Of a DNA stretch of 64,000 nucleotides, positions 13,150 to 64,000 are shown in pieces. Location of the stretch: NCBI GenBank assembly GCA_964247055.1, contig OZ176058.1, forward strand, positions 1,364,001 through 1,428,000. Reading direction: 5' to 3'. Below the pieces are notes generated by a model, which searched no databases, had not been told where the DNA came from, and saw only the letters and a list, made by a program, of their open reading frames with translations. Both the position numbers and the translations under genes were made by a program. Position 1 is the first letter of the stretch, and the number at the start of each line of letters is the position of its first letter. This DNA is from Paragordius varius. Taxonomy: Eukaryota; Animalia; Nematomorpha.

Positions 13150-13259
13150 CTAGCGACCACCAAATTTCTTTTTACCTGCATTTGATTTATTGGTTGAATG
13201 GACTGCTGATGGTTTTTTTCTTTCCTCAAAATTTTCGTTAAAGTCACGTTGTCTATCAG
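13150..13259 (-). CDS. SPT16: SPT16 last exon
   Basis: (A)[35 protein letters not shown]; acceptor ATAG at 13261-13260. Confidence 0.85.
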
Positions 13260-16200
13260 CTATTTATAAAAAACGTAAAATGATATTATAAATTTGAAAA
13301 AGGGGGAGTAAATTAAAACACATATCAACAGTTCTATAAATGCAATTAAAGCCAAATTTTATCATTCCAATTCAATTTTTTCCTAAAAAACATTCTAAAG
13401 TATTTTTTGTTTTAATTTCATTAAATAACAATGATAATGCTAATTTTTTATACAAATTAAACATTTCAATTAAAAATAACAAAAACCTAAATGTTTTTCG
13501 ATGGAAAACTGCACATTTATTTTTTAAATAAATGATGTTGGCCCTTTTAAAAAAATATTGCACAATTATTTATTAATTTTAGTTTTTTAAAATATAAAAA
13601 ATATTTAAATAAAAAATCCAAAAAATTCAAAATTAATTAATCAGTAAAATTCACAATTTCCCATTCACAAACAAATAAAAAAACAGCTGTTGGAGAATCA
13701 TATGTTTCAGACACAGCTGTTTTCATACACATATGATTGGGTGAATGCGGGCGGGCGTTAAGACAGCTGATAATTGCATAAATATACCATTTACAGTTCA
13801 AATTCACCCTTGAACAATACAAATTCACCCTTGAACAATTCAAATTCACCCTTGAACAATTCAAATTCACCCTCAAATGAAATATATGTTTTTTAAGAAT
13901 AAAAATTACCTATATTTTTCAAAAATAAAAGTTTTGTTTTAAAATTAAAATAATACTGAAAAAATAATAAACTACACCATAAACATATATTTCATATTAA
14001 TAATGAATTATTCTAGTTCGAAAACACACAATTAATTTTTAGTGGGTAAATTTGAATTGTTCAAGGGTGAATTTGAATTGTTCAAGGGTAAATTTAAATT
14101 GTTCAAGGGTGAATTTCAATTTTGTTCAAGGGTGAATTTGAATTGTTCAAGGGTGAATTTGAACTGTAAATGGTATATACAATTTGATAAAAGTTAAAAA
14201 CAAAACAAAAAAAACCAAAGGACCATCTTGAAGTGTTTAAGGACACTCTTAAAGTGCAAATGGTATAGTTTACAAACAGCTGTTAAAAAATCATATGTTT
14301 TAGACTCAGCTGTTTTCTACACATCTGTTTATATGAATGCGTTAACACAGCTGATAAATGCATAAATTTTACCTCGAGCAGCTTCAGCTTCGAGTTCATC
14401 CCAATCCTTGCCACTCTCCTCATCGGTTCCGGTTGAAGCGGTACCGTCTGACCCTGTTTCATCGCTACTACCAGCTGATTTTCCGCTACCGCCATCAGCT
14501 GATTCATCGCTATCATCAGCTGATCCGCTACCAGCTGACGATCCGCTCTCACTTGATAATGCGTCTTCCTCGAGCTCGGAAGAGCTTGGTCTATATTCAC
14601 TTTCTTCATCGCTTGATTCACTGAAAGATAAAAAATTTGAAAAAATAAAAATTAAATATATTTAATTTTTTATAAATTAAATTTTTTTAAAAATTTTTTT
14701 TGGAAAATGTTATATTTAAATTTAGTTTTAGGTTAAACTTTATAACAATAAACTTTATGTAACAATAAAAACTTTTTTAAAATAATGGTTATATTATATT
14801 CACTCTCTTCATCGCTTGATTCACTGAAAGTCAAAAAAACAGAAAATATTTAAAAAAATATTTAATTTTTAAAAATATTTTAAATATTTTATTTGAAAAA
14901 TGTTTTTTTTAAATTTATAAACTTTAAAATCATAAATTTATATAAATATGCTTAATTTATATTTAATCACTAAAATAAATTTCAATTAAAAAATAAGAAA
15001 TTTAAAATATTTAATTTTAAAATATTTTGAATATTTTTTTAAAAAATGTTTTTTTGGAAAATGTTTTATTTTCAATTTAAGCTACTAATAAAAAATTATT
15101 TTATAAATATGCTATTATGTTCAATCGATTAAAAAAATTTGATAAAAATTAAAAATAAAAATATTTAATTTTTAAAAATATTTTGAAAATTTTTTAGGTT
15201 TTATTTTCAATTTAAGTTTATATTATAAATAAACTTTATGTTACAATAAATTTTTAATAAAATGATTATATTATGTTAAATATCATCAGTAATTGTTTAA
15301 CTAAGAATATTAAAATTAAAGAGATCAAATATATTTGGAAAAGTATAATTTTAAATTATAAAAATATTTTAATTTAATATTTATTTAAAAAAGTTTAATT
15401 TGGATTTAGCATTATATTCACTTTCTTCATCGCTTGATTCACTAAAAGTAATTTGGAAAAAAACAGAAATTTAAAAATATTTAATTTTTAAAAATATTTT
15501 GAATATTTTTTTAAAAATTTTTTTTGGAAAATGTTATATTTAAATTTAGATTTGTAAGAATAAATTTTAAATAAATGATTATATTATGTTCAATCACTAA
15601 AAGACATTTGAAAAAACCGAAACAGTAATTTAAAAATATATTTAATTTTTAAAATTTTGAATATTTTTTTATATAAAATGTTTTATTTTAAATTTTAGAG
15701 TTGAGATTATTAATAAATTTTAAAAACCGTAATGATTATATTATGTTCAATATCAGTAGTAATTGTTTAACTAAGAATACTAATATTATAGAAATCAAAT
15801 ATATTTGGAAAATTTATTTTTAATGAATAATACAAATATTTAAACATTTGACGTGGTTAATATGTATAAATCTTAAAATTTATTAAAAAAGTTTAATTTT
15901 TTAGCAATATATTCATCAAAAAAGACATTTAAAAAAAACAGAAACAGAAATTTAAAAATATTTAATTTTTTAAATTTTGAATATTTTGGAAAATGTCATA
16001 TTTTAAATTTTAGGTTATAATTATAAATAAACTTTATATAACAATAAATTTTTATAAAGCTTAATTTATGTTCAATCACTAAAATACATTTGAAAAAAAA
16101 CTGAAATTTGAAAATATTTAATTTTAAAATTTCGAATATTTTTTTGAAAGAAAATGTTTTATTTTAATTTAATTAGGTATATGGATAATAAACTCTATAT

Positions 16201-62465: not shown

Positions 62466-62559
62466 TATGATTTAAAAAAAATTAGTTTTAATAAGAATAT
62501 TTTTATTTAAATATTATATATATATATATATATATATATATATAAGTTAAATATTAACA

Positions 62560-64000
62560 TTCAAAGAATCGAAAAAACACTTAAAATTAACTATAAAAAC
62601 CCTTAAAATGCTCAAAAACCAAATTTTAGCTAAAAACTTGCAAATTATGTCATTTTTAACAAATTTTCAATAAATTTTTGTAAAATTCCAAAAACCTCAA
62701 ATATTTACCCTTAATTTGGAGTCTAAAACAGTTTTTCTCAGAGCTTTTCCGCCCTTGAGCAAGACTTGATCAGGCCTTATACTAACGTTCAAGAATCTCA
62801 AAAACCTCAAAATTTATTCAAAAAACGACCAAAAAACGCTCAATTTTATCCAAATTTTACCAAAAAAACTGCAAATTACATAATTTTTAGGTTTTTTTAA
62901 GAAATATTTTCAAAAACCCAAAAATTTACCCGTAATTTAGTGTCTAAAACAGTTTTTCTCAGAGCTTTTCCGCCCTTAAGCAAGACTTGATCAGGCCTTA
63001 TACTAACGTTCAAAGAATCGAAGAAACACTCAAAATTTACTATAACAACCCTTAAAAAGCTCAAAAACATCCATTTTATATCAAAAAACTTGCAAATTAC
63101 TTATTTTTTAAACCATTAACAAATTTTCTCTATAATATTAAAAAAAAACCAATTATTTTACCCTTAATTTAGTGTCTAAAACAGTTTTCTCAATCAGATA
63201 TATTAACATTCAAAGAATCGAAGAAACCCTTGAAATTTACCTAATAACGTCTAAAAACGCTCAATTTTATCCAAATTTTACCAAAAAACCTGCAAATTAT
63301 GTCATTTTTAACAAATTTTTCGGTTTATTTAATTTTTTAACCTTAAAAACCCAAATAATTTACCCTTAATTTGGTGTCTAAAACAGTTTTCCTCAGAGTT
63401 TTTCCGCCCTTAAAAGTAAGACTGATCAGGCCTTATATTAACATTAAAAGAATCTCAGAAACACACAAAATTTACTATAAAAACCTCTAAAAACGCTCAA
63501 AAACATCCAAATTTTACCAAAAAAACTTGCAAATTACATAAATTTTTCAGATTTTTTTAAAAAATTTTTCCAAAAAACCAATCATTTTACCCTTAATTTA
63601 GTGTCTAAAACAGTTTTTCTCAGAGCTTTTCCGCCCTTAAGCAGGACTTGATCAGTTTTAATACTAACATTCAAAGAATCGAAGAAACACTTAAAATTTA
63701 CTATAAAAACCCTTAAAAGGCTCAAAAATATCCATATTTTACAAAAAACCTGCAAATTACATAATTTTTCATAAATTTTTTGTTTAAAGAAATATTAAAA
63801 ACCTAAATAGACCCTTAATTTCGTGTCTAAAACAATTCTCTCAATGAGATATATTAACATTCAACATCTAGTATTACCTCAAAATTAACTCATAAAACAA
63901 CTAAAAACACTCAATATTTTCCAAATTTTAGCAAAAAACCTGCAAATTACATATTTTTAACAAATTTTTAATAATTTTTAACGAATTTTCTTTTTAAAAT
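62560..64000 (-). repeat. Donor-side array of the next upstream SPT16 exon (functional exon presumably beyond 64000)
   Basis: Copies read FDSLNVSIRPDQVLLKGGKALRKTVLDTKLR|GTAAA, which would splice in phase 0 to NEISTE...; at least 6 full or partial copies. Confidence 0.85.

Follow-up and report, generated by a model that had tools for sequence, protein, structure and literature searches.

Our analysis of a 64,000-nucleotide window of the Paragordius varius (Nematomorpha) genome (contig OZ176058.1, positions 1,364,001 to 1,428,000) concerns a minus-strand gene, SPT16, whose introns are largely occupied by arrays of partial copies of the ends of its own exons. To judge from the variants they contain, these exon-edge copies are not neutral debris: they carry the substitution signature of protein-coding sequence, a feature that an earlier reading of the same DNA (below, the first-pass annotation) had missed. 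The best overall explanation is probably that founder duplications spanning exon-intron junctions were amplified, and that the exon-derived portions of the repeats (here called cores) have evolved in concert with the working exon, which is under selection.

SPT16 is an essential housekeeping gene of chromatin and encodes the large subunit of the FACT complex. In a search against solved SPT16 structures the exon that we call E11 (coordinates of all exons and arrays are collected in Table 1) resembles human SPT16 residues 833-888 with an E value of about 1e-22, and tblastn with SPT16 homologues, followed by joining of the matches, gives 15 exons (E1 to E15) with canonical AG/GT borders, all on the minus strand between 60442 and 13150. 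Joined, these exons form a single open frame of 648 codons plus a stop, which represents the C-terminal part of SPT16 and includes its acidic C-terminal tail; the gene runs on past the window edge at 64000. By blastp the joined protein matches residues 480-936 of a 1,045-amino-acid homologue (P0130) in a single collinear high-scoring segment pair (492 amino acids, 54% identity), and it is 63% identical to an Artemia protein (P0054); the nearest SPT16 matches are one crustacean and one fish. On these homologies the gene is SPT16, so the identification made in the first-pass annotation is borne out by structure match, intact joined frame and collinear alignment alike. The annotation's estimate that about 2 kb of coding sequence is inflated to more than 47 kb agrees with the 1,947 nt that we find within the window, spread across about 51 kb (13150-64000). 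The window is extremely AT-rich, with a GC content of 9-30% per 2 kb.

Copies were sought by blastn with the exons alone against the window, matches on the opposite strand serving as a chance control (an earlier blastn search with exons plus 150-nt flanks, reward 1 and penalty -1, gave about 4,000 AT-rich low-complexity matches and was replaced). There are 100 partial exon copies on the gene strand, mostly with E below 1e-9, as against 14 short matches on the opposite strand, all weak enough to be chance (E at least 0.008). Donor-side copies, of which there are 58, end at the last base of the parent exon, lie in the downstream intron and retain the GT in 53 cases; acceptor-side copies (34) start at or near exon base 1, lie in the upstream intron and retain the AG in 29; the remaining eight matches are internal fragments of copies of these two kinds. 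Each of the 92 junction-bearing copies sits on the expected side of its exon, within the neighbouring intron, none of the 100 matches in this search is a copy of a whole exon, and in introns with both kinds the donor-side copies are always ahead of the acceptor-side copies. A motif search adds at least four donor-side copies (62721-63638; 4 found, 0 expected) from an exon beyond the window edge. The first-pass annotation had reported about 100 one-ended copies in the order donor array, seam, acceptor array, with a single complete exon keeping the frame; the number is confirmed, the layout is real wherever both kinds occur, and the frame is indeed intact. It had also said that nearly every intron is built in this way, which is correct if a single copy suffices (12 of 15 introns have at least one) and too broad if true arrays of at least three copies are meant, as these occur at nine junctions in 8 of the 15 introns. 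The three copy-free introns (E2-E3, E6-E7 and E14-E15) are each 1.1-1.7 kb long. Arrays cover 58% of the combined length of the introns from E1 to E15 and span 80-89% of four of the five largest introns; the fifth, E5-E6, is 33% array-spanned and carries a 3.2-kb transposon. The cores themselves total just about 4.8 kb and are spaced 140-600 bp apart, the remainder of the arrays being AT-rich spacer.

The conservation of the copies is confined to the sequence that they share with the exon. When the copies are aligned outwards from the junction, their exon-derived part is 90-100% identical to the real sequence; at intron positions +1 to +3 the figure is 93-98%, and it is about 70-80% as far as +10. 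Beyond +10 or -20 it is 40-50%, which is chance for this composition, and the acceptor side mirrors the donor side. Global flank identity is uninformative in such DNA (shuffled flanks score 73-79%) and was replaced by z-scores of local alignments against shuffles, by which most flank pairs in the E8, E1 donor-side and E4 families have no detectable similarity. The flank pairs that can be aligned differ by 12.4% substitutions and 12% gaps per aligned nucleotide, compared with 7.1% and 2.4% for the cores. Among eight E11 copies mutual identity is 94.9% in the 104-nt core, 76.7% in the 50 columns immediately upstream of it, which are of common descent and not exon-derived, and 71.5% in the first 50 intron columns; the sequence adjoining the E11 core is about five times more diverged than the core.

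The kind of variation within the cores is that of a coding sequence. Distinct variants between cores and real exons number 148, of which 73 are synonymous, 66 non-synonymous and 9 stop-creating; the synonymous share is 49%, as against 23% expected from the observed mutation spectrum, and the same variants read in the two shifted frames are 20% and 14% synonymous. The synonymous share is 70-83% for variants found in several copies and 38-45% for singletons (p 7e-4 to 1e-4); for variants unique to the most diverged copies, most of which stand distal-most in their arrays, it is 36%, nearer the neutral 23%. The ratio of non-synonymous to synonymous variation per site (pN/pS) is 0.15 for copy versus real exon and 0.37 for singletons, so that amino-acid-changing sites in the copies evolve at roughly one third of the neutral rate, even though translation of the copies is not possible. 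Many copies contain stops or frame-breaking indels, and most donor-side copies have no acceptor in front of them. A filter at the level of the protein acts on the real exon only, and the copies must therefore exchange sequence with it.

A simpler account would make the copies a neutral by-product, that is, recent snapshots of the exon which are decaying and look conserved because they are young, set among AT-rich spacers that mutate and slip far faster. Snapshots of a selected exon would by themselves give some synonymous excess, the spacers are rich in homopolymers and (TA)n and have the excess of gaps given above, and the 9 stop-creating and 66 non-synonymous variants, with the frame-breaking indels, are in keeping with decay. 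However, if snapshots simply decayed without selection, pN/pS should be about 0.5 and the synonymous share at most about 37%, neither of which agrees with the observed values, including that of the singletons; the non-exon part of the repeat unit that abuts the E11 core is of similar complexity and yet five times more diverged; and the blastn copies show no gradient of similarity with distance from the exon. We consider this account unlikely.

Concerted evolution of the cores with the exon is favoured for four reasons. Conservation ends exactly at the limit of homology with the real exon. The core and flank trees of the E11 copies disagree: units grouped as sisters by their flanks have 5-8 core differences, whereas a single difference separates non-sister cores, or a core and the real exon. 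Within cores no longer than 104 nt, the four-gamete test fails for 11 of the 22 site pairs that are informative. Finally, in six of nine families divergence is greatest in the distal-most copy, a common pattern at the edges of arrays. The repeats thus combine cores that are alike beyond their flanks, mosaic sharing of variants, and edge repeats that diverge most, the features by which concerted evolution is recognized.

Several points weigh against concerted evolution, or at least complicate it. In the E6, E13 and E5 families the cores show hardly more conservation than the flanks. Unequal crossing-over by itself ought to homogenise the spacers too, so that the contrast between core and spacer requires either short conversion tracts or a far higher mutation rate in the AT-rich spacers, and the four-gamete failures could in part be recurrent C/T changes at a few hot sites. 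A single haplotype cannot separate conversion from real exon to copy, conversion from copy to real exon, and re-founding of copies from the exon. The exon words of the gene are, moreover, absent from all sequencing runs labelled RNA for this organism.

With these reservations the history that we propose is as follows. A few local tandem duplications, which broke once inside an exon and once in the intron beside it, left truncated "half exons" with one splice site inside the intron. Head-to-tail amplification of these founder units then gave arrays that reach 14 units, which enlarged the introns from about 1-2 kb to 4-6 kb. The copies would be tolerated as each is acceptor-only or donor-only, the complete exon being the sole acceptor and donor pair at exon distance, and use of the first donor and the last acceptor would give a normal mRNA. 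The substitution patterns suggest that the cores keep swapping sequence with the working exon and with each other, by short-tract gene conversion and/or by unequal crossing-over within cores, in which case selection on the real exon would indirectly purge amino-acid-changing variants from the whole family; the AT-rich spacers, which have no selected partner and are prone to slippage, would meanwhile diverge to chance level. A bolder extension, which we put forward as possible and somewhat short of probable, is that each exon end evolves in concert with its intronic "echo" copies as one unit. Frequent gene conversion or unequal exchange with the coding exon would then expose intron DNA to indirect protein-level selection and keep the arrays competent for recombination, so that they last longer than other repeats and provide, across the genome, the chief means by which introns grow in this AT-rich lineage. 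Exon-anchored arrays may, by this reasoning, keep a recombination-proficient core and expand while other tandem repeats lose their homology, which would explain why long-period arrays crowd the gene and hardly occur in the 12 kb outside it.

The breakpoints bear on how the arrays arose. Each of several families has a common exon breakpoint (position 67 in nine E11 copies, position 58 in five E6 copies and position 49 in eight E1 acceptor-side copies), and most copies of one family also have the same non-exon flank at that breakpoint, which implies that a founder duplication was amplified and not that about 100 junction-anchored events took place independently. The first-pass annotation had proposed just such repeated junction-anchored duplication, by a mechanism that breaks again and again at or near the splice junction and re-copies it, and this part of it we would replace with the amplification of a few founders. 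Additional breakpoint classes in some families (about seven in E4, 3-4 in E8 and four in the E1 donor-side array), the concentration of long-period tandem arrays in the gene (they are dense inside SPT16 and the tandem-repeat scan of the window finds almost none in the 12 kb outside it), and the sevenfold repetition of a putative poly(A) region after the stop codon could each be taken to favour independent events. On the other hand, the 92 junction-bearing copies fall into only about 25-30 breakpoint classes, which suggests perhaps 25-30 founding or truncating events in total; exon-free tandem duplications are also present within the introns; and an array that touches a junction necessarily contains it, so that ascertainment explains the apparent anchoring. 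We regard independent origin of the copies as quite improbable. Amplification is ongoing, as is indicated by a young 830-bp duplication in the E1 donor-side array (56297-57316 versus 57124-58148 in the self-blast) whose two halves are 95.8% identical. The annotation's argument that duplications breaking once within an exon and once within the intron do no harm is consistent with the strict polarity of the copies, and the two distinctions that it drew also survive: the process differs from growth driven by transposable elements, which make up about 10% of the intron length, and from whole-exon duplication for mutually exclusive splicing, since no copy is a whole exon.

AT-rich repetitive arrays are hard to assemble, and falsely expanded or chained haplotypes might in principle imitate them. 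We compared the assembly with Logan contigs from two samples of the same organism (X1 and X2) over 25440-26285, so that this support consists of contigs across 846 nt. The unique spacers in this interval (25440-25824 and 25873-26109) show zero differences in the contigs built independently from both samples, with even depth (about 170 in X1 and 42 in X2), and core k-mers and unitigs have a depth of 900-2,000, which is 5-12 fold above the spacers, as expected for sequence present in about ten copies; the array depth far below single-copy level for which the first-pass annotation had asked one to look is not seen. In addition, the X1 and X2 runs contain 0.66-0.82 of the sampled 31-mers from 21000-30999, a 10-kb array region, the copies differ from one another by 4-25%, the spacers are unique, and a run from a related organism has an identical 151-nt spacer piece. 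The arrays are accordingly real germline tandem DNA, and an assembly artefact is very unlikely. The related run (X5), labelled as a different organism, matches at 25498-25648 and is divergent at the neighbouring core flanks, which hints that it comes from a very close relative whose arrays are arranged differently.

How the array-filled introns are spliced can be proposed only from their layout: choice of the authentic sites, and silence of the copies, would follow from exon definition if the complete exon alone presents an acceptor and a donor at exon distance. An alternative view of the conservation is that the copies are selected for an RNA-processing function of their own, as landing sites for U1 or U2AF that suppress premature polyadenylation within AT-rich introns, as aids to the stepwise removal of long introns, or as alternative in-frame exons. 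The high proportion of intact splice dinucleotides (53/58 and 29/34) would suit such a function, as would the donor consensus of some E4 copies, which is stronger than that of the real site. Two families offer more particular signs. E8 ends in CAG, so that 11 of its 12 donor-side copies read AG/GT across the junction like ratchet points (in one the sequence is mutated to CT), and E8 is the sole array-bearing parent exon whose copies have this property; in the E6 acceptor-side copies the breakpoint creates a GT, by which a possible 57-nt in-frame cassette exon, repeating 19 residues, is formed. RNA function does not, however, predict variation that is periodic by codon in the frame of the parent exon, nor conservation over as much as 104 nt that ends exactly at the duplication breakpoint, far past the footprint of a splice site or enhancer; retention of the dinucleotides is what is expected at about 7% divergence per site, recursion cannot be general given that E8 and E14 alone end in AG, and most donor-side copies lack a preceding acceptor. 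Selection for such a function is in our view improbable. Two specific candidates were rejected as general accounts. Recursive-splicing ratchet points fit the E8 copies (CAG/GT) alone, the other array parents ending in AA, TT, CA or GG, and the GT of the copies is preceded by exon-derived sequence and not by a polypyrimidine tract; translation of the copies as alternative exons fails on the lack of whole-exon copies and the largely synonymous nature of the variants.

Transposable elements are present in the introns as well, and are separate from the exon-edge arrays. The intron E5-E6 holds a perfectly palindromic Tc1-mariner-like element with two identical 316-aa transposase open reading frames (42378-43328 on the minus strand and 43758-44708 on the plus strand) and with ends that consist of nine 21-bp subrepeats; the best protein matches of the transposase, in Strongyloides papillosus and microsporidia, are just 43% identical. 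An exact look-up of the transposase and of the closest SPT16 homologue returned no contigs. A family resembling miniature inverted-repeat transposable elements (MITEs), with the same 21-bp subrepeats as the mariner-like ends, occurs at 7770-8191, 13793-14167, 19564-19828, 30638-31115, 52610-52881 and 54824-55092, and several of its members are inside SPT16 introns. Together with the 3.2-kb element these constitute the tenth or so of intron length mentioned above. An origin of the arrays from transposable elements or introners was rejected, since the exon-edge copies are confined to the adjacent intron and to the gene strand.

Table 1. Positions of the SPT16 exons, of their partial copies and of the intronic transposon within the 64,000-nt window.
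Feature	Position	Strand	Evidence
Donor-side copies (at least 4; 3' end + GT) of an exon beyond the window edge	62551..63969	-	Tandem Repeats Finder (TRF) 221-bp array, self-blast, motif search
E1 acceptor-side array, 10 copies (polypyrimidine tract + AG + first 46-59 nt)	60595..62459	-	blastn, tandem-repeat scan
SPT16 E1	60442-60327	-	joined open reading frame (ORF) + homologue alignment
E1 donor-side array, 14 copies (last 29-43 nt + GT)	55606..60011	-	blastn
SPT16 E2	54421-54336	-	joined ORF + homologue alignment
SPT16 E3	53169-53099	-	joined ORF + homologue alignment
E4 single acceptor-side copy	51440-51380	-	blastn
SPT16 E4	51075-50897	-	joined ORF + homologue alignment
E4 donor-side array, 7 copies + 1 internal fragment, several exon breakpoints	48479..50617	-	blastn
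E5 acceptor-side array, 4 copies + 1 fragment	47059..48059	-	blastn
SPT16 E5 (donor uncertain)	46935-46771	-	joined ORF + homologue alignment
E5 single donor-side copy	45736-45697	-	blastn
DDE_3/Tc1-mariner-like element, perfectly palindromic, 3.2 kb, intron E5-E6	41921..45165		repeat scan, self-blast, protein search
E6 acceptor-side array, 5 copies (AG + first 58 nt)	40987..41719	-	blastn, tandem-repeat scan
SPT16 E6	40832-40732	-	joined ORF + homologue alignment
SPT16 E7	39008-38890	-	joined ORF + homologue alignment
E7 single copy	38712-38677	-	blastn
SPT16 E8	37658-37533	-	joined ORF + homologue alignment
E8 donor-side array, 12 copies (last 37-67 nt + GT; GT kept in 11/12), three breakpoint classes	32653..37007	-	blastn
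E9 single copies, weak	31824-31802; 31498-31479	-	blastn
SPT16 E9	31665-31563	-	joined ORF + homologue alignment
E10 acceptor-side array, 10 copies (AG + first 17-34 nt)	28420..30269	-	blastn
SPT16 E10	28231-28119	-	joined ORF + homologue alignment
E10 single donor-side copy, GT lost	27863..27901	-	blastn
SPT16 E11	27195-27026	-	human SPT16 structure match + joined ORF
E11 donor-side array, 11 copies (9 with last 104 nt + GT)	22512..26893	-	blastn; read support
E12 copies: acceptor-side 21598-21572; donor-side 20888-20859, 20398-20369	20369..21598	-	blastn
SPT16 E12	21410-21287	-	joined ORF + homologue alignment
SPT16 E13	18588-18473	-	joined ORF + homologue alignment
E13 donor-side array, 8 copies + 1 fragment	16641..18213	-	blastn, tandem-repeat scan
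E14 acceptor-side copies, n=2	14795..15441	-	blastn
SPT16 E14	14620-14373	-	joined ORF + homologue alignment
SPT16 E15 (carries stop)	13259-13150	-	joined ORF + homologue alignment

Several further observations may be recorded. Variation among the E11 cores (26549-22982, minus strand) is clustered in a run of three codons for Pro-Val-Leu, which read CCG GTT CTG in the working exon and occur in at least six versions, mostly synonymous; the remaining third positions are invariant. Beginning 14 nt past the SPT16 stop codon, seven tandem 162-bp units (12014-13136, minus strand) each contain the same conserved block with an AATAAA hexamer, so that a putative polyadenylation region is "echoed" as the splice junctions are. 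Outside the gene, 2755-2970 (minus strand) is the first exon of an SR-type RNA-binding protein (RRM, motif RNPxGFAFVEF), of which no exon-edge copies were seen, and an 80-aa open reading frame at 8960-9202 (plus strand), amid dispersed and inverted repeats, resembles a fragment of a retroelement protein.

Intron size is usually credited to transposons and small indels, whereas the introns of SPT16 have grown mostly by amplified duplications of their own splice junctions. In a single intron the spliceosome faces intact decoys, as many as 14 donors or 10 acceptors, and the genome is in this respect a natural test of splice-site choice, setting exon definition against use of the first donor and last acceptor. 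If the coding-type pattern in untranslated copies is what it seems, selection on an exon reaches into the intron through recombination. Such exon echoes will also mislead gene predictors and scans of the ratio of non-synonymous to synonymous substitution rates (dN/dS).

A full-text literature search found no published description of the phenomenon, and the systems that come nearest each share a part of it. In tandem families such as the ribosomal DNA arrays, and in gene-pseudogene pairs such as CYP21A2/CYP21A1P, similarity is kept by gene conversion or unequal exchange; in such concerted families edge repeats diverge most, and selection on a functional member constrains the rest. The SPT16 families differ from these in that one coding exon end is joined with non-coding intronic fragments of 20-104 nt, and in that the homogenised tract ends at the splice junction. 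Clusters of mutually exclusive exons of the Dscam type are likewise tandem exon-derived repeats within one gene, and consist of whole exons that have a splice site at either end and encode divergent protein sequences; the SPT16 arrays, on the other hand, contain half exons only, of near-identical coding potential, and so are not arrays of that type.

The closest likeness is to the minisatellite in intron 7 (IVS7, intervening sequence 7) of human F7, a variable number of tandem repeats (VNTR) array that begins in the exon end, such that several pseudo-donors of identical sequence and orientation lie downstream of the authentic donor, and experiments show that these pseudo-donors can stay silent, the most upstream site being used (PMC1557585). 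In SPT16 too the first repeat spans the exon-intron boundary and the repeats run head to tail in the same orientation. The F7 array affects a single junction and has a compact 37-bp unit in a handful of copies (PMC1557585); SPT16 does not have such a short, spacer-free unit of tens of bp, its cores lying 140-600 bp apart with AT-rich spacer between them, and it has arrays or copies at 17 or more junctions of one gene, units of 170-600 bp that include up to 104 nt of exon, acceptor-side as well as donor-side arrays, several-fold intron growth and a coding-type substitution pattern, while the silence of its copies is presumed. In intron gain or sliding by tandem genomic duplication (the Rogers-type model), a new intron arises from a duplicated exonic AGGT, and the likeness is that a local duplication including splice signals is neutral when the spliceosome removes the surplus (PMC3265369, PMC4974935, PMC2891723); in SPT16 existing introns are instead enlarged by junction-straddling duplications that are then amplified, and no copy restores a full exon. 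Partial exon duplications beside functional exons are also known from the giant-intron genes of the Drosophila melanogaster Y, where truncated copies lie in tandem with the functional exon within very large, repeat-filled introns (PMC12758392). Those genes are heterochromatic, their copies are called pseudogenes and are sometimes inverted, and their introns are filled by simple satellites (PMC12758392), whereas SPT16 is an apparently ordinary housekeeping gene in which polarity is strict and the arrays are built from junction units. None of the precedents compared joins many junctions per gene, arrays on both sides of exons, several-fold inflation and a coding signature in the copies; the mechanism of origin, tandem duplication and amplification, is ordinary, and it is the regime, together with the evidence for concerted evolution of exon with intron, that appears to be undescribed.

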